DNA of 64,000 bases, taken from Torpedo marmorata (taxonomy: Eukaryota). The stretch covers positions 139,314,001-139,378,000 of the forward strand of contig OZ360225.1 of NCBI GenBank assembly GCA_977017645.1, in the 5' to 3' direction. Under the pieces are notes generated by a model. The model ran no database searches. It had not been told where the DNA came from and worked only from the letters and a program-made list of their open reading frames with translations. Shown here piece after piece: positions 3,576 to 57,625 of the stretch (position 1 is the stretch's first letter; every line of letters begins with the position of its first letter). Position numbers and translations under genes: made by a program.

Positions 3576-6148
3576 TTTATTACCGAAAACTTTTTTGAAT
3601 GCTATTATTACAGTTATACCAAAGAAAGATAGAGATGTATTAAAAACTGAGTCATATAGACCTATATCATTGTTAAATGTAGATTATAAAATAATGGCAA
3701 AAATTTTGACAAATAGATTAGCTAAGTATTTACCGATTTTAATACATTCAGATCAAGCAGGATTTATTAAAAATAGATATTCGAAAGATAATATAGCAAG
3801 ATTAATAAGTTTAATTAATTTGCAAAAAAGGAAACAAGATTTGCCGTTGGTGATAACATTAGACGTGGAAAAAGCATTTGATAGATTAGAATGGAATTTT
3901 TTATTTAAGGTCAGAGAAATATGGATTTGGGAATACTTTTATAAATTGGATTAAAACTATATATAAAGAACCTACAGCTAGAGTAATTACAAATGGTCAA
4001 ATATCATCTAAATTCCCCTTGATGAGGTCAACAAGACAAGGATGTCCTTTATCACCTGCTTTATTTGTATTGGCAATAGAACCGTTGGCTGAAATGATTA
4101 GGAAAGACATTAATATAAATGGGATTAAAGTAGGTACAGAAGAACATAAAATTAGTTTATTTGCAGATGATGTATTAATATATATGACGAAATCTATTGT
4201 ATCACTTCAACAATTAGCTAAGATATTGAGGGAGTATGGTGAGATATCTGGTTATAAAATAAATTCGGATAAGAGTGAGATAATGGCTTTATCTCAAGGA
4301 GATTATACTAAATGTAAAGAAGTTACAGGATTTAAATGGGGTAAAGAAGGAATTAAATATTTGGGAGTTAAAGTAGATACAAAATTGGAAAATTTATATA
4401 AATTAAATTATATACCTTTATTTCAGAAAATAAAGAAAGATTTGGAGAATTGGAAAGATTTACCTATAACTTTAATGGGAAGAGTGAATTGTATTAAAAT
4501 GAATATTTTTCCAAGAGTTCAATACCTTTTTCAATCTATTCCTTTTGGAATTCCTCAAAATTTTTTTAAAGATTTAAAAATTATTATTAGGAAATTTTTA
4601 TGGAAGGGAAAATTAGCGAGAGTAAGTATGGATAAATTAACTTGGAATTATGAGATGGGTGGATTACAACTCCCCAATTTTCTATATTATTATAAGGCAG
4701 CTCAATTAAAGTTTATTAATGAATTTTTTGATTTAACTAAATCTACTGCTTGGATTAATATAGAATTGAATAATATAGGGGAGAGATATAAAGAAGATAT
4801 TATTTATAAATGGAATTCTAAATTATTATTAGTTAAAAAGAAAAATTCACCGATTATTAAACATTTGTTGGAAATTTGGACACAGTTAGACAATGAGATA
4901 GGACGAAAAGGGTTATTATCTCCAAATACGCCATTGTATCAGAATTTACTAATACCTTTTTCTATTGATAATCAATTTTTAAAAATATGGTTTTAAAAAG
5001 GAATTAAGAAGATTAAAGATTGTTTTGAGGCTGGAAGATTTGTTACATTTTCCAGACTGAAAGAAAAATTTGGAATATTGGATAATACAATTTTAGCTTA
5101 TTATCAGGTTAAAGGATTTTTAGTTGAGAAATTGGGGAATCAATTAATAGCTCCAAGACAGGATGGATTAGAATTATTAATTACTAATGGAAATGTTAAT
5201 AAATTTATATCACAAATGTATAAATTACTTCAGAGAAAAATGCCTACGGTAGGATTTCATAAATCAAGATTAAGATGGGAATCAGATTTAAATATTAGTA
5301 TAGATGAAAAACATTGGAAAGATTTATGTAAATTGAGTATGACTAAAATTATTAATGTTAGGTATAGATTAGTACAATATAATTTTTTTCACCAATTATA
5401 TTTGACACCTAAAAAATTAAAGAAATTTAATCCGGCATTATCAGATATGTGTTTTAGATGTAAGGATGAAATTGGTTCGTTTGTTCATTCAACATGGTTA
5501 TGTTCTAAAATTAAGGATTTTTGGTCTAAGGTTAAAGATTTTTTGGATAGAATTTTTAATATTACGGTTCCAATGGATCCTATGTTATTTTTATTTGGAG
5601 ATATTAAAAATTTAGTATTAGAAATAGATTAAATATGTATCAAATAGAATTTTTGCGAATTGTTTTAGCGGTTTCAAAAAAATGTATTGCCATTACTTGG
5701 AAATCAGATTTAGATTTGAATTTAGATAGATTGCATGCAGAATTACGTTCATGTATACCATTGGAAAAGATTACATATAATTTACGTAATAAATATCATT
5801 TCTTTTTGAAAATTTGGAGCCCATATATGAGAATTATGGGTATGAATTAATTCTCTAGAAGTCGGCTCCGCTGGCGAAATTAACCTCCAATATATAAATA
5901 GAATTAGCTTGTAATTTGTTTTCTCCTCACTTTAATTCTTCTATTCTTTATTATTCAACTTTTTTCTTTTTTTATATAATCTTTTTTTTTTCCTTTTTTT
6001 TTTAGAGTAGTGGTGGGGGGGTTGGGGAGGGGAGGGTGGGAGGGGGGGAGGAAATATATCACATGTACTTGGAATGATATATTATTTTTGATCTTTGTAT
6101 TTTGTGATTTTAAAAATTTAAATAAAATTATAAAAAAAACCAAAAAAA
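3576..6148 (+). mobile_element. 5'-truncated L1-clade LINE, frameshifted RT and C-terminus
   Basis: TSD AAACATATAACC at 3564-3575 and 6149-6160; RT motifs YRPISLLNVD, RQGCPLSP, LFADD; AATAAA plus poly-A. Confidence 0.93.
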
Positions 6149-6985
6149 AAACATATAACCAAGCATAAGGAAAGCAACAAGGAAAACAGAATAAAACAAC
6201 AATCTGGACCTACTCCAAGGCCAGTCACCTCAGATGTTGTTGTAATTATTTCAGCCAGGGGAATGTCCCACGTTGTGAAGGCTTTTGGAGTATTCATTTC
6301 TGGAGCTGCTTTTGTTCAGAAAAGAATTAACTTTTAAGAATCCGAGGTACTGCATGGAGAGCTTCTCCAATGCAACGTGATTGAGATTTGGGGCATGATG
6401 CCTGATGCAGATGTAATCAGGGTCTTCAAAATGGAGCTGAATAAACCTGCAAATAAATGAGGCAAGACCTAGAAGTTGGTCCAAGCCTGTACAGACTCAG
6501 TGGGTTGGATGCCTATCCCCTGCATTGTCCAAAAGAGCAAAAGCGCAAACAGCAAAGACACACAGTTGTCAATCATAAGAATTAATTTAAAATCTGAAGT
6601 TAATAAAGCTTTTCCACTAAAGTTGTTGGGTCAAAGAATAACCAAGATCGCATTGAATTATAGAATAGCCTGCAGGTTTCTCTTGTTCCAATTGTTCAGC
6701 CAAAATAATTATTTTTACAATTCCATTTATTCTTTCTTGAGGAATTCGTACAGTATATCCAGGCGCTGAGATTACTGGCCCCCAGCAGCCACAGTCACTA
6801 TCCTATATGCCAGGTTTAATTTCAGCCAATGAAGTTTTGTTTTCTCCATCCCCATTGACTTTACTGGAATTCATAATTTAATTAGCAAGATGGATGCATT
6901 TTCAGGAGTTACTGAACAATAAATAGGATGAAAACCTGGAGTGTTTCTCACTATTTATCCCCTTTATAGTGTTAGCAAAATAGTT

Positions 6986-7233
6986 GTTTATAGCACCAAT
7001 AGCCTGAATACAACTGGGATTGTCTGATCTCAGAAGCTAAGCAGGCACAGGACTGGTCAGTACTTGGAGGGGAGACCGCCAAGGAACACCAGGTGCTGTA
7101 GGTTTCTGTGAGGGGCGCTAGACAAAATAGCGACCCTTTGTCTGCCTTACGGTAGACAAAAATTAAAGAATTTCATGTATGTTACATTCTAAAAAAATGT
7201 AGTATTACGTGACAATAATGGAACCTTTACCTT
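6986..7233 (+). mobile_element. 5S rRNA-derived SINE (SINE3-like): diverged 5S head 6986-7105 plus ~130-bp unrelated body and tail
   Basis: GTCTGATCTCAGAAGCTAAGCAGG...AGTACTTGGAGGGGAGACCGCC...GGTGCTGTAGGTTT is colinear with vertebrate 5S rRNA over 120 nt with many substitutions; ends GTGACAATAATGGAACCTTTACCTT. Confidence 0.75.
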
Positions 7234-8180
7234 AATTACTGGGATCACACTTAACATCTTTACTGCAGACTTAAACAAAACTTGGTTCATTTTACCACTT
7301 TTCTCCTGGGTTGTACAGTGCAACATGCTATCAGACCGCACTGAATCTATTGGGGAAAGCAGGATATTTTCGTTTTAAATTGATTTTTAATTCACTTTAG
7401 TCTATGCATTTTAACTCAGTAATAAATGTTCCAATTACGTAATTCCATTTTAATTAACAACATATCAGAAAATAAAGTATTTGAATTGCAAGGCATTTAT
7501 TTCCGAAGATACAAAGTTTATCTGAAATGCGCATGTTATTCAGAAAATATAAGAACACTTATTCAAGTAGCATCAGTGGATAGATGATGTTTTAACAGAT
7601 TCAGTGTTAAAGAATATCAGGGTGGAAGGAGAAAAGAAACCGATTAGTCAATATAGAACCAGAGAACATTACAGCACAGAAAACAGGCCCTTCGGCCCTT
7701 CTAGTCTGCACCGAACTATTATTCTGCCTGCTCCCACTGACCTGCACCCAGTCCATATCCTTCCATACCCCTCCCATCCATGTACCTGCCCAGATTTTTC
7801 TGAAATGTTAAAATTGAGCCCACTTTCACCACTTCAGCTGGCAGCTCGTTCCATACTCCCACAACTCTCTGGGTGAAGAAATTCCCCCTAATGTTCCCCT
7901 AAACTTCTCCCCTTTCACCCTTAACCCATGTCCTCTGGTTTGTATCTCACCTAACCTCAGTGGAAAAAGCCTACTTGCATTTACTGTACCTATACCCATC
8001 ATAATTTTGTATACCTCAATCAAATCTCCCCTCATTCTTCTATGCTCCAGTCAATAAAGTCCTAACCTTTCCCTTTAATTCAGTTCTTCAAGTCCTGGCA
8101 ACTTCCAGCAAATCTTCTCTGCACTCTTTCAATTTTATTGATATCTTTCCTGTAGTTAGTGACCAAAACTGTACACAATC

Positions 8181-8303
8181 TGTTCAAAACGTACCCGGGG
8201 TGTAGGTTAATGGGGTGTAAATTGGCCGGCACAGACTCGTAGGGCCGAATTGGCCTGTTACAGTGCTGTATGTCTAAACTTTAAAAAAAAATTAAAAATT
8301 TAA
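8181..8303 (+). mobile_element. V-SINE/HE1-like 3' fragment inserted in CR1
   Basis: Matches the 3' half of the SINE at 19240-19435 (GTAGGTTAAT.GGGTGTAA...GGCCTGTTAC.GTGCTGTATGTC) plus an A-rich tail. Confidence 0.7.
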
Positions 8304-8704
8304 TGATCCAAATTTGGCTTCACCAATGTCTTGTACAACTTTGCCATAACATCCCAACTCCTGCCCTCAATACCGATGAGCCAAAAGCTCTCTTTACAAC
8401 CCTATCTACCTGTGATGCCACTTTAAGAGAATTATGTATCTGTATTCCCAGATCCCTCTGTTCTACCTCACTCCACAGTGCCCTATCGTTTACTGTGATT
8501 GCCCTATCTTGGTTTGTCCTTCCAAAATGCAACACCTCACATTTGTCTGCATTAAATTCCATCTGCCATTTTGCAGCCCACTTTTCCTGCTGGTCCAGAT
8601 TCCTCTGCAGGCCTTGAAAGCCTTCCTTGCTGACCACTATAGACCTCCAATCTTTGTGTCATCTGCAAACATGCTGATCCAATTTACCACATTATCATCA
8701 AGAT

Positions 8705-9080
8705 CAGTGGTTTTCAAACTGCCCCCCTAAACTCACATTCCATCTTAAGCAATCCCTATGCCATAAGTGCTCTGTGAATAGTAAGGAATTGCTTAATGTG
8801 GTATGTGAGTGGAAAGAAAAAGGTTTGAAAATCACTGTTTTAATCGTACCTAATTGACTCGTTAAGTGCACGGTTTCATAACTCCAAAGGAAATGGGCCA
8901 ATGACAATTTTTCTCAAGCAAAATATTTCAGTAACAGTTGGGTCTAGAGCAGTGGTTCTCAACCTTTCCTTCCTACTCACATACCACCTTAAGCAATCCC
9001 TTACCAATAACAGAGCACTTATGGCATAGGGATTGCTTAAGGTGGAATGTGAGTTTAGGGGGGCAGTTTGAAAACCACTG
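8705..9080. mobile_element. hAT-type non-autonomous element (composite MITE), copy 1
   Basis: TIR CAGTGGTTTTCAAACT / AGTTTGAAAACCACTG; 8-bp TSD ATCAAGAT / ATCTAGAT. Confidence 0.88.
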
Positions 9081-9635
9081 ATCTAGATCATTGATATAGA
9101 TGACAAACAACAATAGACCCAACACTGATCCTTGAGGCACACCACTATCATGGGCCTCCACTACCACTCTCTTGCTTCTCCCATAAAGCCAATATCGAAT
9201 CCAGTTTACTACCTCACCATGAATACCGAGTGACTGAACCTTCCTGAGTAACCTCCCATGTAGGATCTTGTCAAAAGCCTTACTAAAGTCTATGTAGACA
9301 ACATGCACAGTCTTTCCTTCATCAATATTCCTGGTAACCTCCTCGAAAAACTAAGATATGTTAAACACAATCCATCACGCACCCTAATCAGTCCCTGACT
9401 ATCTAAATACAAGTATATCCGATCTCTTGGAACACCTTCCAATAACTTACCTACTACTGATGTCAGGCTCACCGGCCTATAATTTCCTGGGTTATTTGTG
9501 GGATCTTTTTTAAACAACGGAAGAATATGAGCTACCCTCCAATCCTCCGGCACCTCACCTGTGGCTAAGGACATTTTAAATATATCTGCCAGGCCCCTGT
9601 AATGTCTGCACTAGCCTCCCTCAAGGTTCGAGAAT

Positions 9636-11750
9636 ATAAGAATCAGAATTTATTGTCATGAACAAGTCATGAAATTCGGTGTTTTGCGGCAGCATCATAG
9701 TGCAAACATTCATATTATAACCATCTTATGACAGTACTATAAAAAAAAAAAATAGTGCACGAAAAGTAAGGCAGTGTCTTTGGTTCATTGATTATTCAGG
9801 AATCTGATGGCAGCGGGGAAGAAGCTGTCCTTGTGATGTTGAGTGCTCGTCTTTAGGCTCCTGTACCTTTTTCCCGATGGTAGCAGAGTGAAGAGGGCAT
9901 GGCCTGGGTGGTGGGGGTCTTTGAGGACAGAGGCTGCTTTTTTAAGACACCGTCTCGTGTAGATGTCCTCGATGGAGTGAAGTCTGGTGCCTGTGATGTC
10001 ACAGGCTGAGTTAACAACCCTCTGGAGTTTATTCTTGTCCTGAGAGTTGGTGCCTCCATACCAGGCAGTGATGCAACCAGCCAGAATGCTCTCCACGGTA
10101 CACCTGTAGAAGTTTACGAGAGTCTTCGGTGACATACCAAATCTCCTCAGACACCTCACAAAGTATAGCCGCTGACGAGCCTTCTTTGTGATTGCATCAA
10201 CGTGGAGGCTCCAGGACAGATCCTTGGAGATGTTGACACCCAGAAATTTGAAGTTCTTGACCCTCTCCACTACTGAGCCCTCAATGAGGACTGGGTCGTG
10301 TTCCCCTGACTTCCTCCTGAAGTCCACAATCATCTCCTTGGTTTTGCTGACGTTGAGCTCAAGGTTGTTGTCGTTACACCATTCAACGAGCTGATCTATC
10401 TCCCTCCTGTACGCTTCCTCATTGCCTTTTGTGATTCTGCCGACAACTGTGGTGTCATCGGCAAACTTGTAGATGGCATTGGAATTGTGCCTGGCCACAC
10501 AGTCATGGGTGTATAAAGAGTAGAGCAGTGGACTAAGCACGCATCCTTGGGGTGTGCCTGTGTTGATAATCAGTGAGGAGGAGACGTTGTTTCCAATTCG
10601 TACTGACTGTGGTCTTCCGATGAGAAAGTCAAGGATCCAGTTGCAGAGTGGGGTACAGAGGCCTAGAGTTTGTAGCTTCTTGACCAGCACTGAGGCCGAG
10701 CTGTAGTCGATGAAGAGCAGCTGTATGTATGAATTGCTGTTTTCGAGGTGATCCAGGGATTCTAGTAGGCACTGTTTTGTTCTTCTCAAAGCGGGCATAG
10801 AAGGTGTTCAGCTCATCGGGTAGTGAAGCATCACAGCCGTCTATAGTGTTCACCCTCGCTTTGTAGGCTGTAATGGCCTGCACTCCCTGCCATAGCTGGC
10901 GTGTATCTGTCTCTGTCTCTAGCTTCCTCCGGAATTGCCACTTTGCTTCAGAGATGGCCTTCCGCAGGTCGTTCCTGGACTTCTTGTAAAGATCCCTGTC
11001 CCTGGCCTTAAACGCCCTTGTTCTCGCCCTCAGCAGGTTGCGAATTCTCTGATTCATCCAGGGCTTTTGGTTGGGGAACACCCGGTATTTGCGCGTTGGC
11101 ACACACTCATCCACGCAGGTCTTGATGAAGTCGGTGACACCTGTTGCATATTCATTCAGGTCTATGGATGAGTGCTTGAATATGTTCCAGTCCACCGATT
11201 CAAAGCAGTCCTGCAGACGCTCCTCCGCCCCCCTCGACCATACTTTAGCCGTCCTCACCACTGGTGCTGTGGTCTTCAGTCTCTGCTTGTACGCCGGGAG
11301 TAGAAGTACAGCCAGGTGATCAGACTTGCCGAAGTGCGGTCGTGGGATGGCTCGGTATGCGTTCTTCACGGTGGTGTAGCAGTGGTCGAGTGTTGGTTCC
11401 CCTGGTCTCGCATGTGATATGTTGGTGGTAGTTTGTCAGTGACTTCTTCAGATTGACCTGATTGAAGTCTTCCACAATGATCGGGAAGGCATCAGGATGT
11501 GTTGTCTCATGGCTGTTTATCACAGTGCTCAGTCCCTCCAGTGCCAGCCTGACGTTAGCCTGGGGCGGAATGTACACTGCGACCAGGATGAAGGCGGTGA
11601 ACTCCCTCGGCAGATAGAATGGGCGACACTTGATCACCAGATGTTCCAGGTCGGGGAAGCAGGACTGGGACATGACCGTCACGTCTGTGCACCACGATGA
11701 ATTGATGATGGCACAAATGCTGCCTCCCCTGGTTTTTCCAGACCCTGGGG
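9636..11750 (-). mobile_element. Rex1/Babar-like non-LTR retrotransposon, 5'-truncated with internal deletions
   Basis: APE fragment (AVYIPPQAN, GKSDH), RT motifs [11 protein letters not shown] and KFADD, C-terminus [10 protein letters not shown]; 3' end CATGACAATAAATTCTGATTCT. Confidence 0.88.
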
Positions 11751-12189
11751 ATTGATACACCTTTATTCGCTTTACAGAGCATACTCTGTAATTGTTTCCA
11801 GATTTATTTGAAAGTGACCTTGTCACAATCTCCTCATTAATCTATTGTAATAATGATTCAAATAGTAGTCTACAATAATTTGTATCTGTGGTGCAGTTTC
11901 TTTTCTGTATCTGGGCACTGTAAGTGTCTTTGTTCAGAAAATAACTGAAGCAGGAAATGCTCCTGTGTGATCGCTGATAACTGCTTGTTTGACATATTCT
12001 CTTTAATATCTCATGTTGGGAGTAGGTTGCTTATGGTAGCTCCATACAAAGTTACTGAGCCGATTGCGATTTAAATGCCATTTATAAAACAAATAATTGC
12101 AATTTATGGAAGCTTTGAAGTTTTAACAAACTTTCAAGGAGAACAAATCACAAAAAAAAAAGATTTCCTGCTAAGATATGCCAGACATT

Positions 12190-15095
12190 AGAACACAGTA
12201 CAGGCCCTTCGGCCCTCAATATTGTGCTGACCCCGACCCATATATCCCTAAAAAAAAGTACTAAACCCACCCTATCCTGTCACCCTCTATTTTTCCTTCA
12301 TCCATGTGCCTGTCTAAGAGTCTCTTAAATGCCCCTAATGCTTCAGCCTCCACCACCATCCCAGGCAAGGCATTCCAGGCACCCACAACTCTGCGTAAAA
12401 AACTTACCCCTAAACTTCCCTCCCTTCACTTTGTACATATGTCCTTGATGTTTGCTATTCCTGCCCTGGGAAACAGGTGCTGGCTTTCCACCCTATCTAT
12501 GCCTCTCATAATCTTGAAGACCTCTATCAAGTCTCCTTTCATCCTTCTACGCTCCAAAGAGAAAAGTCCCAGTTCTGCTAACCTTGCCTCATAAGACTTG
12601 TTTTCCAATCCAGGCAACATCCTGGTAAATCTCCTCTGCACCCTCTCCATAGCTTCCACATCCTTCCTATAATGAGGTGACCAGAACTGAACACAATACT
12701 CCAAGTGTGGTCTTACCAGAGATTTGTAGAGTTGCAACATGACCTCTCTACTCCTGAACTCAATCCACCTATTAATGAAGCCCAGCATCCCATAGGCCTT
12801 CTTAACCATCCTATCAACCTGTGCGGCCACCTTGAGGGATGTATGGATTTGAACCCCAAGGTCCCTCTGTTCATCCATACTCTTAAGTAACCAACCATTA
12901 ACCCTGTACTCAGCCTTCTGGTTAGTCCTTCCAAAATGCATCACCTCACACTTATCCGGATTGAACTCCATCTGCCACTTTTATGCCCAAATCTGCATCC
13001 TGTCTATATCCTCTTGTAACTTTCGACAACCTTCAGCTCCATCCACAACTCCTCCAACCTTCGTGTCATCCGCAAACTTACTGACCCATCCTTCTGCCTC
13101 TTCATCCAGGTCATTTATAAAAATCACAAAGAGCAGAGGTCCCAGAACAGATCCTTGCAGCACTCCACTAGTCACCGACCTCCAGGCAGAATACTTTCCT
13201 TCCACTACAGGTGCCTAACCTTTTATCCGAAAACCTTGGGACCGGACACTTTTCGGAATTCCGATTTTTTCGGATTATAGAATTATTTTAACGGCGGTAC
13301 TTTTAAATAATTGCGTTGCTTCAGATTCGCGCAAAACAAAGACACACTCCAACTAGAAGGGTTTCTGGACGGTGGCGTTGGATGGTGGCGAGTTGCGGCG
13401 GCGCTCGACAGGGGGGGTTCGTGGCGGCACTGGGTCGTGGGGGGGTTGCGGCGGCACTGGACGGGGGTGATCGCGGCGGCGCTGCATGGGGGTGTTCGCG
13501 GTGGCGCTGGGGGTTTCAGCGGCGCTGGACGGGGGTGTTTGCGCCGGCGCTGGATGGGAGGGGGGAAGTGAGATAAAGATAGACCATAAAATTACTAGTG
13601 TACTTTTTATTTTTAAGTAAAACATATAGTAAAACTTCAAACATTAACTGGCTCAAACTAAGCGAAACACCTGAAAATATACTGGAAAAAATGTTCGGTT
13701 TTCGGAATTTCGGATAAAAGGTTAGGCAACTGTACTACTCTCTGCTTTCTTCCTGCAAGCCAATTTTTTATCCACACAGCCAAGGTTCCACTGGTCCCAT
13801 GCCTCATGACTTTCTGGATGAGAATCTCGTGGGAGACCTTGTCAAATGCCTTGCTAAAATCCATGTAGACCACATCTACTGCCCTACCCTCATCAATTTC
13901 TTTTGTTACCTCCTCAAAAAACTCAATTAGGCTCTTGAGGCACGACTTTCCCTTCACAAAGCTATGCTGACTATCCTTGAGTACACTGTACTTCTCCAAA
14001 TGCTCATAGATCCTATCCTTAAGAATCATCTCCAATAGATTGCACACCACTGACGTTCGACTCACCGGTCTATAATTCCCAGGATTCTCCCTATTACCTT
14101 TTTTAAACAAGGGGACTACATTTGCCATTCTCCAATCCTCTGGCACATCCCATGCGGCCATAGAGGATTCAAAGATCATCTCTACTGCCCCAGCTATCTC
14201 TTTTATCACTTCCCACAGCATCCTGGGGTATATCGCGTCCGGCCCTGGGGACCTATCAATCTTGATGTCTCTAAGAAGATCCAATACTTCCTCTTTCTTA
14301 ATCTCCTCATTGTCCAGCGCACAGGCCTGTTCTATTCTGACCTCACCCTGATCAAGGTCCTTTTCTTTTGTGAAACAAAGTATTCATTTAGGACCTCCGC
14401 AACCTCCTCCGCCTCCAGGCACATTTCGCCTCCTTTATCCTTTAGTGGCCCCACCCTCATTCTCGTCATCCTTCTGTTCTTCACATACGCATGGAACGCT
14501 TTGGGGTTCTCCTTAATCCTACATGCCAAGGCCTTCTCATGCCCCCTTCGAGCTCTCCTAAGTCCTTTCTTAAGCTCCTTCCTGGCAACCATATATTTCT
14601 CATGAGCCCATCCTGTTTCCTGCTTCCTATATCTATATGCTTCCTTCTTCCTCTTGACTAGTTGCCTCACCTGTTTTGTCAGCCACGATTCCATTTTCCT
14701 ACCATCCTTTCCTTGTCCCAGTGGGACAAACCTATCCTGAACCCAGCACAAGTGGTTCCTAAACTTCCTCCACATTACTTCCGTGCTTTCACCCTTGAAC
14801 ATCTGTTTCCAATTTACTCTCGCTAGTTCCTGCCTCATCCCTTCATAATTAGCCCTTCCCCAGTTAAGCACTTTCCTATTTTGTCTGTTTTTATCCTTTT
14901 CCATAGCTATGCTGAAGCTAAGGGAGTTGTGGTCGCTCTCACCAAAATGCTCCCCCATCAGGAGGTCCACCACTTGACCAGGTTCATTACCCAGAACTAG
15001 ATCTAGTATGGCCTCTCCTCTCGTCGGCTGGTCCACATACTGTGTCAGGAATCCTTCTTGAACACACCTGACAAATTCAGCCCCATCTATCCCGT
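12190..15095 (-). mobile_element. CR1 LINE (endonuclease end to 3' end), frameshifted, interrupted by a MITE
   Basis: ORFs 14332-15144 (PTRGEAILDLVL, ESDH), 13658-14284, 12981-13205 (KFADD), 12426-12971. Confidence 0.92.
13208..13732. mobile_element. TcMar/Tigger(pogo)-like MITE with GC-rich interior
   Basis: TA TSD; ~25-bp TIR CAG(G/T)TGCCTAACCTTTTATCCGAAA; the CR1 reading frame resumes on both sides. Confidence 0.88.
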
Positions 15096-16460
15096 TAGTA
15101 GTAGGTAAATTATCGGAAGGTGTTCTAAGAGATCGGATATGCAATTATTTGGATAGCCAGGGACTGATTAGGGATAGTCAACATGGCTTTATGCGTGGTA
15201 GATCATGTTTAACCAATCTTATAGAGTTTTTCGAGGAGGTTACCAAGAAAGTTAACGAAGGAAATGCTGTGGATGTTGTCTATATGGACTTTAGTAAGGC
15301 CTTTGACAAGGTCCCGCATGGGAGGTTAGTCAGGAAGGTTCAAACGCTAGGTATTCATGGTGAAGTAGTGAACTGGATTTGACAATGGCTGGACGGGAGA
15401 AGCCAGAGAGTAGTGGTGGATGATTGCTTCTCAGATTGGAGGCCTGTGACTAGTGGTGTGCCTCAGGGATCGGTACTGGGACCATTGTTGTTTGTCATCT
15501 ATATGAATGATCTGGATGACAATGTGGTAATTGGATTAGTAACTTTGCACATGATACTAAGATTGGAGGTGTGGTAGACAGCTAAGAAGGTTTTCAAAGT
15601 TTGCAGAGGGATCTGGACCAGCTGGTAAAGTGGGCTGAAAAATGGCAGATGGAATTTAATGCAGACAAGTGTGAGGTGTTGCATTTTGGAAGGACAAACC
15701 AAGAAAGGACATACATGGTAAATGGTTGGGCACTGAGGTGAGGTAGAACAGAGGGATCTGGGAATACAGATACATAAATCCCTGAAAGTGGCGTCACATG
15801 TGGATAGGGTTGTAAAGAAAGCTTTTGGCACATTGGTCTTCATAAATCAAAGTATTGAGTACAGGAGTTGGGATGTTATATTAAAGTTGTATAAGACATT
15901 GGTGAGGCCAATTTGGAGTATTGTGTGCCGGTTTGGTCGCCTAACTACAGGAAGGATATCAATAAGATAGAGTACAGAGAAGATTTTCTAGGATGTTGCC
16001 CGGACTTCAGGGACTGAGTTACAGGGAAAGGTTAAACAGTTTAGTACTTTATTCCCTCGAGCGTAGAAGAATGAGGGGTGATTTGATAGAGGTATTTAAA
16101 ATTATGAGGGGGATAGACAGAGTAAATGTAGATAGGCTTTTTCCATTGAGGGTGGGTGAGATTCAAACAAGATGACATGGGTTAAGGGTGAAAGGGGAAA
16201 AGTTTAGGGGGAACATGAGGGGGGAACTTTTTCACTCAGAGAGTGGTGGGAGTGTGGAACGAGCTTCCAGCTGAAGTTGTAGATGCAGGCTCGATTTTAA
16301 CATTTAAGGGAAATTTGGACAGGTATATGGATTGGAGAGGTATGGAGGGCTATGAATTGAGTACAGGTCAGTAGGACTAGGCAAGTAAAACTGGTTCGGC
16401 ACAGACTAGAGGGGCCGAAGTGGCCTGTTTCTGTGCTGTTATGGTTCTTTGGTTCTCTCT
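15096..16460 (+). mobile_element. 5'-truncated CR1 LINE (RT and 3' end), followed by a TC/TCTA microsatellite to ~16510
   Basis: QHGFMRGRSCLTNL, DFSKAFDKVPH, RGDLIEVFKI; closely similar to the reverse complement of 7640-9630. Confidence 0.9.
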
Positions 16461-16942
16461 CTATCTCTATCTTTCTTTCTTTCTCTATCTCTATTTCTCT
16501 CTATCTATCGCCACTGCTCCTTTTGGATTTACTTCCACTCTCTGCCATTAGCACATCACTTTTGCAATAAATCAGATTAAAATATAATGAATTCAGTAAT
16601 GAATACAACTAGTGCTGCTGTGATAACACCCAAGAGTTATGCAACTCATAGATTTGAAATTCAGTACCTTTCCCTTGAGAATCCTGAGTAATTGGAGAAA
16701 AGCTCCGAGCTAATGCATATAATCTGTGTGTGCAGTATTCACAACTTTAACGTGGAGCACTGCAGACTGGCATCTTAATACTGTGAAATATTACATTGAA
16801 AAATAAATTACTATTTTTTGCATTCTTGAATACTGGTCTGAGAAAAATAATTAAAGAAACTTATGGGCAAGCATGTTGGTAAATTGTTGGTGGTGCTTTG
16901 TCTTGATTAGTAATGGTGAAAAATTGGAATTTAATTCCACAG

Positions 16943-17147
16943 AACCAGTATATTATTGGCAGCAGACTGATGAAGACCTAACTGTAAATATCCAACTACC
17001 AGAAAGCACAACAAAACAGAGCATAGAGTTCCAGTTGTCATCGGATTACTTGCAAGTTGGAGTAAAAGGACAAGTCGTTTTCTTAGAGGGACAGTTATTC
17101 TCTTCGGTAGACCACGGCCAGAGCACTTGGACAATCACGGAAAATAG
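16943..17147 (+). CDS. NUDCD1: Internal exon of NudC domain-containing protein 1 (CS/p23-like domain)
   Basis: Translates EPVYYWQQTDEDLTVNIQLPESTTKQSIEFQLSSDYLQVGVKGQVVFLEGQLFSSVDHGQSTWTITEN, matching vertebrate NUDCD1 as I recall it (EPLYYWQQTEDDLTVTIRLPE...FLEGKLYSSIDHESSTWII). Acceptor TTCCACAG|, probable donor AG|GCAAGT. No other exon recognised in the window. Confidence 0.9.
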
Positions 17148-17859
17148 GCAAGTACTTTCCCTGCTCTCATTCTTAATAATTGCATGGTAACAGGACAGAA
17201 CTAGCAACAGTTTACGTGGGAAAGACCTCACTGATTACCTGAAGTTTGTTGAAAGCATATGTTGCCATTGTGGAAGTCCCAAACCTTTTGAGAGATCTTG
17301 GCACGGTCATTCCAACTGTACTCTGATATTGGACTTGCTAGAGTTCAGGAACAGAGCTCCAACTTGTTGCAGTCTCAGCAGTCACACGAGGGATTCACCC
17401 ACTGAACCCCTGCAGATTAGGGTTAGCATAGGTTCATCAATTGCATCCTTTTCATGAGAAAAAGGCATAATTAAGACAATGTAATTTTCAGAATTAATTT
17501 ATTTAACAAATGTTTAATAGTTTTAAAATATTGTTGTTTTAATGATTACGGTAATTATTAAAATTTTAAAAATCAATTAAGAAATAATTAAATATTTTAT
17601 GAGATGAATCTTAATAGTTTTTGAGTGCTTTGTGAATGTTGGTGTTATTCACAGGTATTGAGACTTATTTCAACCAACTAAGTTGCCATAACACATAAGA
17701 AGGAGAGAGTAGCAGATGAGTGGCTTGCCAGATCAAGGCAGGCAAGGAAGGGATGCCCTTGGGACAGGGTGGAGGTGTATGCAGAAAGTTGCCAAGGTAA
17801 ACCTTATCCTCAAAAGACTGGTCAGATCCAAACTCATAATTTTTTTGCCCAATCTGTGT

Positions 17860-27318: not shown

Positions 27319-30300
27319 TTTCTTTTTAAAATATTTTTATTGAGTTTCAATAATAAACATGTATACAGAGTAACAAAATTAGGAAAAACATTCAAAAAAA
27401 TCAGCTGGTATTCATACGTGAATATATTAAAAAAAACGAAGTAAATTGTTGTAACTAAATTCTGAATATAGGTTAAAACTCTAGTTCCATATAATTATCT
27501 TAAAAAAACACTTGAAAATAAAATAAAATGAAAGAAAAAAAAGACCAAAAAAACCACTAATAACTAATCTATTCTAACCACTCCCTCTAAGCAAGGTTAC
27601 CTTGATGTTGTAAAAAAGGAAAAAAAAAGGGTATGGATCCTGTAGCGACCTCCAAGCATCGGACAAAGTCCTCGGTATAGTCAGTTTTGTTAATTCTTCC
27701 AATCATGATAGTATTCAATGAATGGCCCCAGATCTTTAAAAATTGAAACTTTCTATCTTTAATATATCGAATTTACTCCAAACTCAGAAAGTACATTACA
27801 TCTAGTAACCACTGTCTATGTGTAGGTGATAACTCATCTTTACATTTCAATAAAATTGCTCGTCTGGCAATCAACGTGGAAAAAGCTAAAACTTTTTCCT
27901 GTGATGCAGACAAAGGTATGTAAGTTCACGTGAAAAACCAAACAGAGCAATTATAGGACATGGTTCAATATTAATCTTAAAAATCAATGATAAAGATTTA
28001 AAAATATCCTTCCAAAATCTCTCCAAATTGGGGATTTCCCAAAACATATGTATCAGTGAAGCTTCAAAAATTTTACATCTCTCACACAATGGATCTATGT
28101 CAGTGTAAAAACGTGATAGTTTAAGTTTAGACATATGAATTCTATGCACCACTTTAAATTGTAATAAACACTGTCTAGCACAAAAAGATGAGGTGTTAAT
28201 TAGATCAAGAGCATTGTACCAATCTTGATCTGAAAATGTAACATTCAAATCTCGTTCCCATTCATTCTTGATCCCCGTCATAGAAGCTACTCTGATTTCC
28301 AATAAATTATATATACATGAAGTTAATCCACGTTGGAAAAATAACTATATTAAAAAGTAAATCGAGAAAATTAGAACTTAAAATTCGAGGAAAATCTGAA
28401 ATCTTAGACTGAACAAAATGTTTAATTTGTAAATATCTAAAAAAATGTCTATTAGTAAGATTAAATTTATTGACCAATTGTTCGAAAGTGGCAAAACTAT
28501 CTCGAATAAAAAGATCATTAAAACTATGAATTCCCAATCTATACCATTCCCTAAATCCTACATCCATCACAGACGGCTGGAAAAGGTGATTATCTATAAT
28601 AGGACTCGCCAGAGAAAAACTATTAAATCCAAAAAAAATTCTAAACTATGCCCATATTCTCAAGCTATATCTCAATACCGGATTATGAGTTATTTTAACA
28701 AATGAAAATGGTAAAAGGGATCCTAAATTTGCTAACATAGATGTTTTTTTTGAAAACTTTAATTCCATTTCCACCCAGGATGGGCGATTCTCTAACTTAT
28801 CAAAATGCAATAACAAAAGCAAATTACGAATATTAATCACCCAATAATAAAATCTAAAATCTGGAAGTGATAATCCTCCATTCCTTTTTGATTTTTTGAA
28901 GATGGGATTTATTTATACGTGGATGTTTTCCATGCCATATATATGAAGAAAGAATCGAATCCAATGAAGTAAAAAAGGTTTTAGGAATAAAAATTGGTAA
29001 GGATTGGAAAAGATATAAAACTTTAGGCAAAATATTCATTTTAATCGAATTAATGCAGCCCATCATTGTAATTGATAAGGGTGACCAACCCACTAGTTGT
29101 AATTTAACCTTATTAACTAATACCCAAAAAATTTCTTTCAGTAAATTTTTATGGTTTTTTGTAATTGTTATTCCTAAGTATTGGAATTGATCGTTCACTA
29201 TTTTACAGAAAATTAGAATAACCAATAAAAGGTCCTTTTAAAGGCAATAGTTCACTCTTTTGTATGTTTAATTTATACCCTGAAAATTGACTAAATTGAG
29301 TAAATAGGGTTAATATATTTGGTATAGAAAATTCAGGATTTGAAATAAATAACAATAAATCGTCTGCATAGAGAGATACTTTATGTTCAATTCCGTTTCT
29401 AGTTATACCTTTAAATTCTCTACAATGTCGAAGAGCAACAGCTAGAGGTTCTAATACTATATCAAAAAGCAAAGGACTTAACGGGCAACCTTGTCGGGTT
29501 CCTCTATTAAGCCGAAACATATTTGATTGTTGTAAATTAGATCGAACTGAGGCCATAGGACAAGAGTATAATAACTTAATCCAGTTAATAAAATCAGAAC
29601 CAAAATTAAATTTATATAAAATAGCAAATAAATATTCCCACTCCACCCAATCAAATGCTTTTTCAGCATCTAGTGAAAGGACACATTCCGTCACCGGAGT
29701 AGAAGGTAAATATAAAATATTCAACAATCTATTAATGTTATAATATGAATTACGATGTTTAATAAATTCAGTCTGATCTGAATCGATAATTAAAGGTAAA
29801 ATATTTTCTAATCTATGTGCTAATACTTTAATGAAAATCTTCATATCTACATTAAGTAAAGAAATGGGTCTATAAGATGTGCATTCAGTCGATTCTTTAC
29901 CCTTTTTAAGAATTAAGGAAATACTGGCCTCATTAAAAGATACAGGAAGCTTACTCTCATTAAATGAGTCACCCAATACCACACTCATGAGGTACAAGCT
30001 GTTTGGAGATAGATTTATAAAATTCCACAGGAAATCCGTCTGGCCCTGGAGATTTACCAGACTGCAGCGAGGAAATAGCGAGGGCTATATCCTCTTGAGA
30101 AATAGGTTTCTCCAAGCTTGCACGTTCATCCTGAGGTAGTACCGGAAGATTCAATGGATCCAAAAATTCAGACATCAAGTCATGATTATTATCAAATTCT
30201 GATTTATAGAGGTTAGAATAAAATTCCTTAAAAGTCTCATTTATTTTAAGATAATCTGTTGTCATTTTTCCATCTTTCATCCTAATCTTGTTTATTTGTT

Positions 30301-50310: not shown

Positions 50311-51450
50311 ATCTATCTATTTCTGATTTATCCCTGACCTGAAATGCATTATCGTAGTTTTTGGAAGGAAAACGGTTGATCTCGTTGCTTGAACATTTTC
50401 TGTGGATTGTTTTGTGGCTCTAAATACATTTTGAAAATGTCAACAACAAGCTCTATTAAATAGAAGTTGGGTTCATCCTAAATCCCAGTCACCCATTACA
50501 TTTGTTGACTTAAATTGGTTTCCAGCCATCAGCACCTCAAATTTAATAAAACAAACTGCTGGAAGAGCTCAGCAGGTCAAGCAGCATATGTACGGGCAAG
50601 GGGGTGGTTGATATTTTGTGTCAGGAACCTGCATCAGAACTGGGGGTGCAGAGGGAATATAGCAGGTATATAGAAGTGAGAGGGAGAGTTGAAATGAAAG
50701 CTTGGAGGGGGAGCACATTTACTGAGCAAGGACATGCGGCTGTGATACTGAGTCTTGGTGAGCAGTTGAGGCGATGGAGGGAGAACTGTGAGAGAGGAAC
50801 TCGTAGAACTCCCATTGAAGAGAGGAGGAGAACTTCAAAGTGGATATGCCTTGAAGAGAATTTGCAGTGGAGAATAGACAAGAGACTGCAGATGCTGGAA
50901 TCAAATAAAAAAATCTGGCCAAGCAGCATCTGTGAAGGCAGGGTTGATGTTTCAGGTCAAAACCCTGGATTTGCAAAACTCATGTTAAAGGGAGGAGGAA
51001 AGCTTCATGGATCTCTCTTTTTGTTTCAACTGCTCACCTGCTCTTCGACAATGTTCTCACTAAGACTTTGTACCATAACTGCATGTTCTTTCTCTCAATG
51101 TGCCAGCTTCTTAACTTCAAGGCCTCGACCATCCCCTGCCTCCACAGGTGCTGCTCAACCTGCTGAGGTTATCCAGCAGCTGTTTTCTGGTCCAGATTTC
51201 AGCACCTACAGTCTCTTGTGCTTTGGTTTTAACATTTTTATGCTTGTGCAGATTTTTCCAGGCCCTTAATCCTCACTGCCTCTAGAACCTCTTCCTCAAC
51301 TGTGCAACGCTCCAAGCTCTGGATGGAATGGATGCGTTGGGCATAAGGGCCTGTTCCCGTGCTGTATAGCTCCATGTCTCTGAGACCATGGTGTTACTCT
51401 AATTTTGAACTCTAGTATTTTTCATCCCCTTGCCACTAACAGTCATTTTT

Positions 51451-51495
51451 CTTATACCTGAAGAAGAGCTCAGGCCTGAAACATTTGTTACCCTT
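51451..51495 (+). ncRNA. Minimal hammerhead-ribozyme-like motif in a Penelope-type tail (probably degenerate)
   Basis: CTGAAGA (51458-64), stem II AGAGC-TCAG-GCCT, GAAA (51478-81), C ATTT G TT; stem I is weak. Confidence 0.5.
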
Positions 51496-51589
51496 TACTT
51501 CCTCTGGCTGCTGAGTGACCTGCTGAGTTTACCAATGTGTATTGCATTTCATTCATCATCTGTCTCTGTTGCTCCTTTAAGTGTTCCTA

Positions 51590-52643
51590 AAACCAGTATC
51601 TCTTCATCGACTACAGCTCAGCCTTCAACACCATCATTCCCTCAGTGCTGGTCAAAAAGCACCAAAACTTGGGCCTCAGCACCTCTCACCCCCTGCAACT
51701 GGATCCTTGACTTCCTCATCGGAAGACTACAGTCAGTACGGATTGGAAACAGCGTCTCCTCCTCACTGAAGATCAACACAGGCACACCTCAAGGATGCGT
51801 GCTTAGCCCACTGCTGTATTCACTCTACACCCATGACTGTATGGCTAGGCACAATTCAAATGCTGTCTACAAATTTGCTGAATCATTGGCAGAATCACAA
51901 ATGACAATGAGGAAGCATACAGGAGGGAGATAGATCAGCTAGTTGAGTGGTGTCACAACAACAATCTTACACTCATCGTTAGTAAAACCAAGGAGCTGAT
52001 TGTGGACTTCAGAAGGAAATCAGGAGAACACGAATCAGTCCTCATCGAGGGGTCAGCAGTGGTGAGGGTCAAGACCTTCAAATTATTGGGTGTCAACATC
52101 TCTGAGGATCTGACCTGAGGCTTGCATTTCGATGCAATCACGAAGAAGGCTCACCGGCGGCTCTACTTTGTGAGGAGTTTGAGGAGATTTGGTATGTCAC
52201 CAAAGACTCGAAAATTTCTACAGCATTCTGACTGATTAGCATCTCCATACCAGACAGTGATGCAATGCACAGGACAGGAAAAAACTCCAGAGTTGTTAAC
52301 ACTCTTCACTCCATTGAGGACAAAAACAAGAGGTGGTGTCTTAAGAAAGCAGCCTCTATCCTCAAGGGCCCTCACCATCCGGGCCATGCCCTCTTCACAC
52401 TGCTACCATCAGGAATGAGGTACAGGAGCCTGAAGACGAGCACCCAACAGCACAAGGACAATTTCTTCCCCTCTGCCATCAGATTTCTGAATGGACAATA
52501 AACCACAGTCACGACCCCACTTTCTCCTTTTATTTTGCATTATTTATTTATTTTGAAATGTAATTTATAGCAATATTTGCACTGTTATGCTGCCTCAAAA
52601 CAACGAATTTCGTAACATGTTCATGACAATAAATTCTGATTCT
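51590..52643 (+). mobile_element. Decayed Rex1/Babar-like RT and 3' end
   Basis: [24 protein letters not shown], tail CATGACAATAAATTCTGATTCT. Confidence 0.88.
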
Positions 52644-53783
52644 ATCTGGGACCAAGCTAGCTATCTTCTATCCTAACATGCTCCTTTAGCTACGGTGTCA
52701 CATTGTTAACGTCATATTTGCATGAGGTACCTTCGAATGCTTCGCTATATTATTGACACTGCATCAACTTGTTGAGGCTGCTAAAATGTAATTCACATGA
52801 CTTTTGATCGTGTAGCATCTGACTTTCTGGAATGGATGTGATCTGGTTTGGTGCAGAATCAGGGCCTGAAGTTTTGTGTGTCATGTCACTAAGCATTATC
52901 TTGAATGCTCCTTTTCCATTTTAAGTTAAATAGTATTTTCTACATGCCAAGTATCTGAACATTTTTTGGTATGAATTTGGGGATAAATAGCCAGTATTTT
53001 CTTATCCTATTATTGCAAAATAACTTCTGTGCATTGCACCTCCTTGAGAAATTTGTGGAAATGTGAAAATTGCCTGTTTTTGAAACCGTATCTTTGAAAT
53101 TTCAGAAGTGGAGCTTCAAGATGTATACAGTCTGAATCTGGGAATCCATAAATCTATTAAGTGGGGAGTCATCAGACTAAGGAAGGCAGTAACAGGTGGT
53201 GCACTGGGCGGAGGGAGAAGAGTAATTGCTCATTATTCAGCAGCAGTATCACATGTTAGATTGAAGTGCCTTTTAAGAAAATTTGCAACAAATTGTTCAG
53301 CTTCAAACAACTGGGCTAATATAAAAATCGTTCATCTGCCAGAAGTCTAGTACCCTCTGTTCCACACTTGATTACATTTGAATTTGTTATCATTAATCAG
53401 TATTTTAGGAATGGCAAGAGCAGTTGGCTTTTTACAAAGCTGACAGTAAAATAAGTCACGGATTCCTGGATCAAAAATAAGGGAATGTTGCCTGCCTCAA
53501 TCCAAAACAGTGTACTTAATATTCTTAAAATCCTTCACATTGAAAAATGTCCTAAGGTACTGCAGAGCAGCATTATTGAGCCAAGTTTTACACATGAGGA
53601 AATGTTTTAATAGGTAGAAGACTAAAATATTTAGCAGATTTTTTAAGGAGCTTCTTAAGAAGGTGAGAGATTTAGGAGAGGAATTCTAAGCATTGCTTAG
53701 ACAAAAAGTAATCTTCTCTTTTAAAAATGAAATACTTTTGGAATTCATAGTTTTTCTCTTGCCAGTCCTATTTATTATAGCTA

Positions 53784-54673
53784 CCGTATATTTCGACGTA
53801 TAAGTCGAGTCTCGAAACCCTCAAAAATCTCTCAAAAAACGGGGGTCGACTTATAAGCCAGATATACTTTTAACTACTCCACGCCGATTCGGCGTATAAG
53901 TCGATCCTTGAAAACCCGATTCAGCGTATAGGTCGACCCATGAAAACCCGATTCGGCGTATAGGTCGACCCTGGAAGCACCTCCCCACCGCCAGTGCCGC
54001 CGCTCCCTGACACCTCCCCACCGCCAGGTGCCGCCATAAACCACCCAAACATTCTACAATTGTAGAGCCCGAGGTCCCCGCTCCTACCTGGGAGCCTGAG
54101 GTCGCCGCTCCTGCCCGGTAAGCCGAGGCTCCTGGCCGCTAGGGTGAGGTTCCTGCTCCTGCCACGTAGTCCGAGTCCATTCCCGACCTGCCTGGAGAAC
54201 GAGGTCGCCGCTCCTGCCCGGGAGAACGAGGTCGCCACACCTGCCTGGGAAAACTAGGTCGCCGCTCCTGCCCGGGAGTCGACACGCAGCCGTGGTTCCT
54301 GCACCGAGCACACTTGGGCAGCAAGGTGACTTCTTCGATGCGGACAGCACTGCACCTGATGTGGAGAATGGAGTCGCCTGTCGCCGACTCTGGCTGAAGC
54401 CGATGTTGAAGACTTGGACCCAGCTCCTTTTGGCATCTTCCTGGCCAGAAGCAAAGTTTTTTTTACAGTTTTTTTACTTGCTTGCTTAATTTACAGCTTT
54501 GTTACTTGGTGATTGGGGTGTTGTAACAAATTTTGGGTTGTTGCTGGGAGGCCCGGACAGCCCGAAAATTGGGGGTCGACTTATACACCGGATATACAAT
54601 AAAACCATTAAAATGAGGCTGAAAAAGGGGGGTCGACTTATCCACGAGTCGACTTATACGCCAAAATATACGG
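53784..54673. mobile_element. Non-autonomous TcMar (Tc2/pogo-like, CCGTA-ended) DNA transposon with captured cargo
   Basis: TA TSD; 25-bp TIR CCGTATATTT(CGA/TGG)CGTATAAGTCGA, 23/25 identical; subterminal GTCGAC(T/C)TATA repeats; internal ~27-bp GAGGTCGCCGCTCCTGCCCGGGAG repeats at 54068-54278. Confidence 0.92.
54280..54436 (-). pseudogene. DMRT1: Captured 5' fragment of a DMRT1-like gene (N-terminus and first half of the DM domain, two frameshifts)
   Basis: Minus strand reads MPKGAGSKSSTSAS.. / ..ATPFSTSGAVLSASKKSP / [14 protein letters not shown]; compare DMRT1 MPNDEAFSKPSTPS...[20 protein letters not shown]. Confidence 0.85.
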
Positions 54674-55899
54674 TAATTATCTCTTTTTTTTTACCTTCTT
54701 TGTTAGATACAGGTCTTAGGGAGTGGTATAGACTGGGTATCAAATTTTTTAAAGATCTTTTTATTTGAGATAATTTTGCTTCTTTTGAACAATTGAGGGC
54801 AAAATTTAAATTACTCAACAGTCATTTTTTCAGATATTTACAAGTCAGACATTTTGTTCAATCCAAGCTCTCTGATTTTCCAAGGATTGCTGAAACAAAC
54901 ATTCTCGCTAGTTAAGATTAAGAGTGATTGGGAGCATGAATTGGATTTGTCATTTACAGATGAGGACTGGGCTAAGGTTCTAAATTTGATTAATGACTCC
55001 TCCTTCTGTGTGCGACATTGTTTGTTGCAATTTAAAGTAGTGCATAGAGTACATATGTCAAAAGTTAAACTATCTCGCTTTTATTCTGATATTGATCCAT
55101 TATGTGATAAGTGTAAAATTTTTGAGGCTTCATTGATACATATGTTTTGGACTTGTCCTAGTTTAGAAAATTTTTGGAAAAATTATTTCCAAACTTTATC
55201 AATCATTTTTAGGGTCAATTTAGAACCATGTCCATTAATTGCTTTATTTGTTTTTTTCTCAAGAAGAAGATATATTATTAACTTCATCTCAGAAGTGAAT
55301 TTTAGCTTTTACCTCATTGATAGCTAGACGGGCAATTTTGATGAAATGGAAAGACAGTAACTCCACCTACTCACATTCAATGGTTACAGGAGGTCATGTC
55401 CTTCCTAAGTTTAGAAAAAAATCAGATATAATGTTAAGGATGTAAAGGTGAATTTTTACAAGATGTGGGGCCCATTCATGGACTATTACTACAATTTAAA
55501 GAATTAGGGTGTTTGGATGCTCCTGAGAAGTGTTGACTGGTTTCCAAATATCATCTTTCGTTCCTATATTTATTAGATATGCAAGTTAACCTTGTTTAGA
55601 GGGAAGGGTTTGATGAACAGGGGGGGGTCTTTTCTTTTCCTTTTTTTGTGTTTACTTTATTTTTCTTTTGAGATATTTTGATAAAATGGGTTTGATTGAG
55701 AATGGTACACACAATTTATACTACGTATGACTAAGGTACTATTTGAGAAGTACTTATTATCTGTCTCTCTTATAGTTCAGCCCATGTATTAGATTACTGT
55801 GTGTATGTTTTTTTATATTAAGCTCAATAAAGATATTTTAAAAAGTAAAAAATAAAATACTGCATTGACAGAATATTTAAGATGGAGCTGTTACTCAGT

Positions 55900-57625
55900 T
55901 CATAGAGTTATATGGCATGGAAATGGGCTGTTCAGCCGCAAATTATTTACCCATGTGTTTGTGTGTTTCTTCCATATCCCTTGAAATCTTTCTTATACAT
56001 GTACATGTCAAATTGTTTTTTTTAAACATTGCAATTGTACCTGCCTCTCCTCTCTGACAGCTTATTTCATGTACCTACCACGCACTGTGTTGGGTAAAAC
56101 TTGCTCCTCAGATCACCTTACATTATTTCCCCCCTCACTTTAAACCTATCCTCTTTAATTTTAGACTCCCCTATATTGGGGAAAAGATTGTGACCATATT
56201 CCCTATCTATGCCCCTCATTTTTTTTTTATAAACCTCTCAGCCTCCTCTCCAGGGAAATCAATCACAGCCCACACAATCTCTCCTTTTTTTTTCTAAGCT
56301 CTCCACTCCAGGCAACATCCTTTTTTTAAAAATATTTTATTTAAAATTTTAAATCACAAAATACATAAGGTAAAATATAAAATTATCAAAATACTTGTGA
56401 TACATTTTCACCCCACCCTCCCCTCCCTAACCCTCCCAACCCTACTAATCTAATAAAATAAAAATAAAAAAGAAAGAAAAAGATAGAGTAAGGAGAATGT
56501 TAATCTAAAAAATACATCTATAAACTAATTCTATTATGGAGATTAGGTTTGCCAGTAGATCCGATGTCTAGAGATCTTCAGATCCTTAAACTGACAATTT
56601 TCATATATGGGCTCCAAATTTTTAAAAAGAAATGATACTTATTACGTAAATTGTAAGTAATTTTTTCAAGTGGTATACATGAACGAAGTTCTGCATGCCA
56701 TCTTTCTAACCCTAAATCAACATCAGATTTCCAATAATAGCAATACATTTCTTTGAAACAGCTAAAGCAATTCGCAAAAATTCTATTTGATATATATTTA
56801 ATTTCATCTTAATACTAACTTTTTTGATATCTCCAAACAAAAATATCATAGGATCCATTGGGAATGTAATTTTTAATACTTTGTCAAGAAACTTTTTAAC
56901 TTTCAACCAAAAATCATAAACTTTTGGACAAAACCATGTAGAATGTACGAAAGAACCTTCCTCTTTATTACATCTAAAACATAAACCTGATAATGTCGCA
57001 TTGAATTTCTTTAATTTTTTAGGTGTTAAATATAATTGATGAAAAAAATTGTATTGTACTAATCTATATCTAACATTAATAATCTTCGTCATACTTAATT
57101 TACATAATTCTTTCCAATGATTTTCATCTATTGTTACATTCAAATCTAATTCCCACTTTAATCTTGATTTATGAATTCCTACTTTAGGGATTTTTCTCTG
57201 AAACAATCTATACATTTGAGAAATAAATTTATTTACATCTCCTTTAGTAACTAATAATTCTAATTCATTCTGTCTTGGTAAAATCAAACTATAACCTAAT
57301 TTCCCAACCAAAAATGCTCTAATTTGATAATAAGAAAAAAGTGTATTATCCAATATATTAAATTTATCTTTCATTCTTTGAAAAGTAATAAATTTCCAGG
57401 CAACATCCCTGTGAATCTTTTCTGCACCCTTCCTCATTTAATAATGTCCTTCCTATAGCGTGGCACCAGAACTACAGCAGTCCAACAGACATGATGTCCT
57501 AATTAAGTTCCCTCTATTTTTCCCTTGCCCACCAATTTTAATATCATCTGTAAATGTACTAATCCTGCCACCTGCGTTCCCGTCCAAATCATTAATATTA
57601 ATATCGATATATTGTGACAAACACA
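55900..57625 (-). mobile_element. Decayed CR1 3' region hosting an L1 insertion
   Basis: CR1-type 3' sequence at 55900-56320 and 57395-57625 (KIHRDVAW, STFTDDIKIGG). Confidence 0.65.
56321..57394 (-). mobile_element. 5'-truncated L1 (same subfamily as 1097-2176 and 45880-47088)
   Basis: 14-bp TSD TCCAGGCAACATCC at 56307-56320 and 57395-57408. Confidence 0.93.

Follow-up and report, generated by a model that had tools for sequence, protein, structure and literature searches.

DMRT1 is the most widely reused sex-determination gene of vertebrates, and the question raised by the window (i.e., the whole 64-kb stretch of DNA analyzed here) is how a piece resembling the very beginning of this gene came to lie inside a transposable element, and what it means there. 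We consider, at a probability of roughly 70%, that the element is one copy of an abundant non-autonomous family with terminal inverted repeats (TIRs), and that an ancestor of this family captured the 5′ end of DMRT1 and amplified it as non-coding sequence.

Positions 53784-54673 of the window make up an 890-bp non-autonomous DNA transposon of the cut-and-paste type. TIR-pattern matches place its two 26-nt TIRs at 53784-53809 (+ strand) and 54648-54673 (− strand), the left end reading CCGTATATTTCGACGTATAAGTCGAG and the right end, once reverse-complemented, CCGTATATTTTGGCGTATAAGTCGAC, and a TA target-site duplication (TSD, no strand assigned) lies directly outside each of them (53782-53783 and 54674-54675). 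A degenerate 26-mer TIR pattern is matched twice in the 64-kb window, both times by the element ends (expected, 0.00), and the eight GTCGACTTATACGCC-like motifs of the window (up to 3 mismatches; expected, 0.47) are all inside the element, five near its left end and three near its right end. Motif and repeat scans further resolved a left subterminal block (53795-53969, no strand) with five GTCGACTTATA-type motifs (53795-809 −, 53845-859 +, 53891-905 −, 53923-937 − and 53955-969 −) and a 32-nt tandem repeat of 2.9 units (53884-53976), and a right subterminal block (54575-54662, +) with three such motifs (54575-589, 54632-646 and 54648-662). The interior consists of a GC-rich region (53978-54279, no strand; GC 0.67), the DMRT1-like cargo (54280-54436, −) and, directly upstream of the ATG of the latter, an AT-rich stretch (54437-54560, −; GC 0.41, CpG observed/expected 0.2) that may be DMRT1 5′UTR or promoter, or else the element's own sequence. 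Repeats are also found within the GC-rich region, i.e., a 17-nt direct repeat (53978-94 and 54011-27) and two 27-nt GC-rich tandem arrays (54069-54128, 2.2 units; 54187-54278, 3.4 units). The open reading frames (ORFs) of the element are at most 105 aa long and include no transposase of its own, and the three longest minus-strand ORFs over the cargo hit no Pfam family besides a weak DM match. Scans of the 64-kb window with the TIR pattern and the subterminal motifs found neither an autonomous partner nor a second copy, a search of 53600-54850 against Rfam gave nothing at E ≤ 1, and when the element was folded as single-stranded DNA (z = −1.2) only the pairing of the TIRs stood out. The idea that a DMRT1 binding site travels aboard the element was dropped, as ACAWTGT, which we take to be the binding core of DM proteins, occurs 13 times in the window and 0 times in the element.

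The element sits in an L1 fragment, and the target can be followed on both of its sides. The left part (53736-53781, +) aligns over 53736-53772 with 28634-28598 at 89% identity and shows repeat-level depth from bin 53734-53783 onwards, while the right part (54676-55400, +), from the C-terminal region of ORF2, aligns with 28576-27793 at 73-79% and holds an ORF (54854-55327) with a Cys/His motif, presumably of L1 type. An L1 paralogue elsewhere in the window (27793-28634, −) is colinear with both flanks (53736-53772 and 54694-55399; 73-89% identical) and reads ...attatagaTAatcac... across the homologous site, with one TA, i.e., the empty-site configuration. Parts of the stretch are also present in 12 public runs from six coded organisms, none of them on record as RNA, although X3 might be of that kind, and four of these runs (X1, X2, X3 and X5, from coded organisms A-D) were aligned to 53484-54973 at 80% likeness, as contigs and not as raw reads. 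Among these contigs, six in X1, two in X2 and three in X3 join 53772 to 54682, 54686 or 54693 and thus represent L1 copies without the element. The CpG observed/expected ratio is 0.95 within the element and 0.16-0.20 in the two flanking kilobases, so the insertion is younger than its surroundings. The TIRs, the TSD and the empty-site paralogue all agree with the earlier note on this DNA, in which a TIR element with a TA TSD was described as having moved as a unit and landed cleanly in an L1 fragment.

The host gene around the element is NUDCD1, recognized by an exon at 16912-17151 (+) that corresponds to residues 272-352 of the coelacanth protein, at 54-57% identity. Identity over this exon amounts to 44-45% with a teleost NUDCD1 and 52-60% with the coelacanth, mammal, bichir and sturgeon proteins; the closest named NUDCD1 among 301 stored proteins reaches ~60%, and 79% is attained only against an 86-aa ORF. 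Such values would suit a host outside the bony vertebrates, for instance a cartilaginous fish as assumed in the earlier note, but fall short of proof. No further NUDCD1 exon was found in the window, be it in the 16.9 kb upstream or in the 46.8 kb downstream, and therefore the introns of this gene must be very long, as in a large genome. Given that the element lies 36.6 kb downstream of the exon and that no later exon follows in the window, it is probably situated in such a very long intron. The earlier view of the cargo as antisense to the NUDCD1 pre-mRNA thus stands as far as orientation is concerned, the cargo being opposite to the exon, and is only probable with respect to the intronic position. 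Other remnants of retroelements lie nearby: a 167-aa ORF at 51430-51933 (+) has a reverse-transcriptase-like stretch, which we take to be probably a LINE fragment of another family than L1, and a 241-aa ORF at 56712-57437 (−) belongs to the C-terminal part of L1 ORF2, its nearest Atlas clusters carrying zf-RVT (PF13966) and being from Chordata.

The cargo itself is a DMRT1-derived pseudo-coding piece that was recognized from its frames, a Pfam DM match, a PDB match and the majority letters of the family. From its ATG (54436-34) it runs through a Ser/Ala/Gly-rich N-terminus, KKSP(R), a 1-nt gap, an 11-residue DM stretch and (Y)VS, and in the window copy this order is spread over three minus-strand frames, i.e., MPKGAGSKSSTSAS... 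after the ATG, ...SASKKSP..., and a 15-residue DM piece ending at 54280, with GTCGAC (54278-83) closing the cargo. The reading of 54436-54280 (−) in the earlier note was thereby reproduced, including the three frames and the end at GTCGAC. Two frameshifts are implied, of which the first is putative, as is the homology of the N-terminal stretch, both being read off the sequence. The ORF holding the DM piece matches Pfam DM (PF00751) at E = 0.002 and 18.4 bits, below the cutoff of 27, and covers 13 of the 47 profile positions (positions 3-15); the other two cargo ORFs have no Pfam match. Among solved structures, the best match is 4yj0_A, the DM domain of human DMRT1 (E = 0.015), with 11 residues identical, and Drosophila Doublesex scores E = 0.21. 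A protein search with the 61-aa ORF of the DM piece yielded five candidates, none at E ≤ 1, among targets of 0.55-1.75 times the query length, a range that excludes full-length DMRT1. The cargo lacks both an intact frame from the ATG and a full DM zinc module, which has 47 profile positions and a pair of intertwined zinc sites; it is a fragment, not a gene.

More can be learned from the rest of the family. The X1 majority letters, obtained blind to the protein reading, were put into the window copy, which was then translated. Within the cargo the majority differs from the window copy at seven positions, i.e., 54287 C>T (58,271 of 58,384 depth), 54323 A>G, 54327 T>C, 54357 T>C, 54379 T>C, 54397 A>C and 54406 T>C, whereas 54363, a minority change in X1, was left out of the count. 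In translation, KKSPC turns into KKSPR and HGC into HGY, and HGY is also the reading of the human DMRT1 chain 4yj0_A. We take KKSPR before LPKC and Y after HG to be the features that separate DMRT1 from DMRT2, DMRT3 and DMRTA, and as the majority letters restore two DMRT1-type residues, they strengthen a DMRT1-type origin. Thus, the Pfam DM match, 4yj0_A and the restored R and Y all point the same way as the earlier note, which had called the internal piece DM-derived and of DMRT1 type. Could the likeness nevertheless be an accident of GC-rich, repeat-derived sequence? The Pfam score below cutoff, the mere 13 matching residues and the blank search with the 61-aa ORF (in which length limits excluded full-length DMRT1) speak in favor of this, but 11 residues that agree exactly with the DMRT1 chain have, by our own codon-degeneracy arithmetic, a chance of ~1e-14 per codon position and ~1e-9 per window, and the independent majority letters improve both diagnostic residues and bring KKSPR next to LPKC. 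We therefore regard chance as a scarcely credible explanation.

The majority reading also tells when the frame was lost. In it, KKSPR and LPKC abut with a single base missing between them, and no indel at this junction reaches 10% of depth in any of the four runs, which makes the frame break family-wide (at least 90% of depth). Because the gap is shared in the majority reading, a single capture is probable, with the frame lost ahead of the rise of most copies, and the letters indicate that coding capacity was gone before the amplification or at an early stage of it. This leaves without support the suggestion that truncated DM peptides could come from less decayed copies, as the break is family-wide and only 13 of the 47 DM positions are there at all. 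The GTCGAC that closes the cargo, described in the earlier note as identical to the core of the subterminal repeats, does not generalize to the family either: at 54279 the majority has C for T (44,560 of 44,688 depth in X1) and hence GCCGAC, so the identity is private to the window copy. Position 54379 is also subject to a 1-nt deletion, at 3% of the depth for X1, 47% for X2, 53% for X3 and 18% for X5. When this base is left out of the majority-letter version, a frame of ~190 codons opens that places the ATG in frame with a 12-residue DM stretch and continues through the 27-nt repeats; we consider it probably a coincidence, because KKSPR is then out of frame. No copy carrying this frame was seen among the contigs, the frame having been built from letters of different runs.

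How abundant is this piece? In X1, 33,620 contigs align to the 1,490-base stretch (L1 flanks included), 3,416 of them at 99% likeness or more, 10,002 at 95-99%, 15,372 at 90-95% and 4,830 below 90%. Summed contig depths, which are to be read as orders of magnitude and not as copy numbers, rise in this run from 5.6 in the single-copy left flank (53484-53683) to 1.04-1.65 million over 53784-53983 and to 2.29 million in 54584-54633, i.e., as a rough indicator, an excess over the flank of up to ~4 x 10^5-fold. For the cargo bins (54284-54433), the summed depths are 104,877, 126,483 and 285,061, which is ~19,000-51,000 times the flank in summed depth (not copy number) and ~5-20% of the contig depth at the element ends. 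The lowest bin of X1 is 54134-54183 (15,632), and towards the AT-rich side the depth reaches 200,000-516,000 over 54434-54533 and 1.08 million in 54534-54583. Cargo bins stand at 5,838-15,817 vs 2.3-10.4 for the flank in X2, at 422-995 vs 0 in X3 and at 727-1,322 vs 0 in X5. An indicator that is independent of depth is the number of distinct X1 contigs with the majority letter at each of the seven cargo positions (75-109, on a count that goes no higher than 128), from which it follows that the DM piece exists in very many non-identical copies; individual cargo positions are spanned in X1 by at least ~100 different contigs. The one copy in this 64-kb window would fit 10^4-10^5 copies in a several-gigabase genome. 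The earlier note had thought that a family may be dispersing DMRT1 pieces in this genome, an expectation that is far exceeded, with the cargo found in all four coded organisms examined.

The family is at the same time heterogeneous, and in many of its members the cargo may be missing or altered. Contig joints that leave out the DM start were seen at 54231>54329, 54224>54322, 54278>54324 and 54118>54328, and another one (53841>54572) skips nearly the whole interior. Most family members have a segment after 53871 that is absent from the window copy (loose ends in 105 X1, 52 X2 and 5 X3 records), and the number of 27-nt repeats varies among copies, contig joints as well as loose ends falling at 54065, 54115 and 54194. 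Such a wealth of deletion forms lends itself to a different account, by which the DM-like stretch would be the remnant of the family's own ORF, coding for a protein with an N-terminal DM-type zinc module or for a whole DMRT1 copy, and the 890-bp form an internal-deletion derivative in which the 5′ end of this ORF was retained. With the ATG 237 nt from the right end and the reading directed inward, the layout is that of deletion derivatives of autonomous elements, and an ORF belonging to the transposon itself would begin at the same place; the similarity, moreover, breaks off abruptly inside exon-type sequence at ...YVS. However, KKSPR and the Y after HG are of DMRT1 type and not those of a generic DM protein (the comparison with the paralogues being one we presume from general knowledge), and a transposase that has a DM domain is not known to us. 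Nor did a longer form come to light: the TIR pattern had 0 matches in a metagenome scan and 0 in a viral scan, and the cargo pattern 0 in a further metagenome scan, searches in which such a form could hardly have shown itself. Taken together, we judge an origin from the family's own ORF to be unlikely.

The wide occurrence of the cargo calls for a further comparison, i.e., between capture within this lineage and arrival from outside. Horizontal transfer of the element with the cargo already aboard would make the fragment a piece of another species' DMRT1, and elements with a TA duplication of the Tc1/mariner kind do often transfer horizontally. Parts of the stretch are found in the runs of six coded organisms, with the cargo in 4 of the 4 examined (A-D), but vertical descent explains sharing among related species equally well, and the 25,374 of the 33,620 X1 contigs that are 90-99% like the window copy (L1 flanks included) are compatible with a long residence. 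We hold such an arrival from elsewhere to be improbable.

Capture in the ancestry of this family thus remains our preferred reading, and we postulate the following course of events. The ancestor of the family, or of a large subfamily, would have acquired a stretch from the 5′ end of DMRT1, ~160 nt in length and perhaps as much as 280 nt, that begins with the start codon and reaches position 13 of the DM zinc module; this extent, and nucleotide colinearity with the host DMRT1, are presumed from a match that exists at the protein level, and among the contig pieces listed for the four runs none could be recognized as the parent locus. Template switching during the repair of excision gaps is the usual route by which Pack-type elements capture sequence, and the piece was presumably acquired in this way. 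One base between KKSPR and LPKC would have been lost before most copies arose, after which the piece could have been amplified as a non-coding passenger, the element being moved in trans by a transposase encoded elsewhere, which the TA duplication would suggest to be of the Tc1/mariner type. The window copy would finally have inserted at a TA in the L1 fragment, probably in a NUDCD1 intron and in antisense orientation, and have gathered its private changes since.

For plants there is ample documentation of TIR transposons that capture gene fragments, and a vertebrate Pack-type element at very high copy would be an uncommonly successful case of this kind. The element of the window is a Pack-type TIR element of very high copy, notable for its copy number and its cargo. 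Like Pack-TIRs and Pack-MULEs, it has TIRs and a TSD, no transposase, and an internal piece that is a putative host-gene fragment including exon sequence. According to the main text of a survey by Tan et al. (2021), 100 animal genomes contain 370 Pack-TIRs, mostly single-copy with few multicopy ones, and the median captured size is 224 bp (PMC8277862). The cargo of the window element (~160-280 nt) is near that median, whereas the 10^4-fold excess contig depth of its cargo part sets it apart from the mostly single-copy Pack-TIRs of animals, and “dmrt” has 0 occurrences in the main text of the survey, supplementary element list aside (PMC8277862). In being short and non-coding, with TIRs and a TSD and in high copy, the element also qualifies as a MITE, and its TA TSD is that of Tc1/mariner MITEs, with which it shares shortness, high copy, TA duplication, TIRs and lack of coding capacity. 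Unlike these, it is long (890 bp), with many subterminal repeats, 27- and 32-nt arrays and a host-gene piece, and the TcMar label given to it in the earlier note is putative, with the TA TSD as the single trait behind it. DNA transposons have been linked with DMRT1-family genes before, as described for the Izanagi element in the promoter of medaka dmrt1bY (PMC2820524) and for the hAT-derived exon 4 of Xenopus dm-W (PMC9250109). In those two cases a transposon contributed to a DMRT1 duplicate, whereas here it is the transposon that carries a DMRT1 piece, of which only a fragment can be read. Literature searches, judged largely by title, brought up no account of a DMRT1 fragment aboard a transposon, and the cargo peptide strings and TIR strings had no match in the literature.

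As to what the cargo does, we consider it a likely neutral passenger, as no function is needed to explain the data. That antisense or small RNA from it acts on DMRT1 would be speculation. It is conceivable that tens of thousands of copies of the first ~160 nt of DMRT1 coding sequence, many of them antisense in transcribed introns, feed the germline piRNA machinery and so couple transposon silencing to the dosage of a master gene of testis determination, or that a sex-linked copy or cluster acts as a regulator of DMRT1; such a reading, which appears very unlikely to us, has its whole basis in what the cargo is by sequence and in how many copies there are. Annotation is concerned as well. The cargo corresponds to the 5′ coding end of DMRT1, and its copies will give thousands of spurious DM-domain or DMRT1 matches in tblastn searches and gene-prediction pipelines applied to these genomes, and can pass for DMRT1 duplicates where sex-determining genes are sought.
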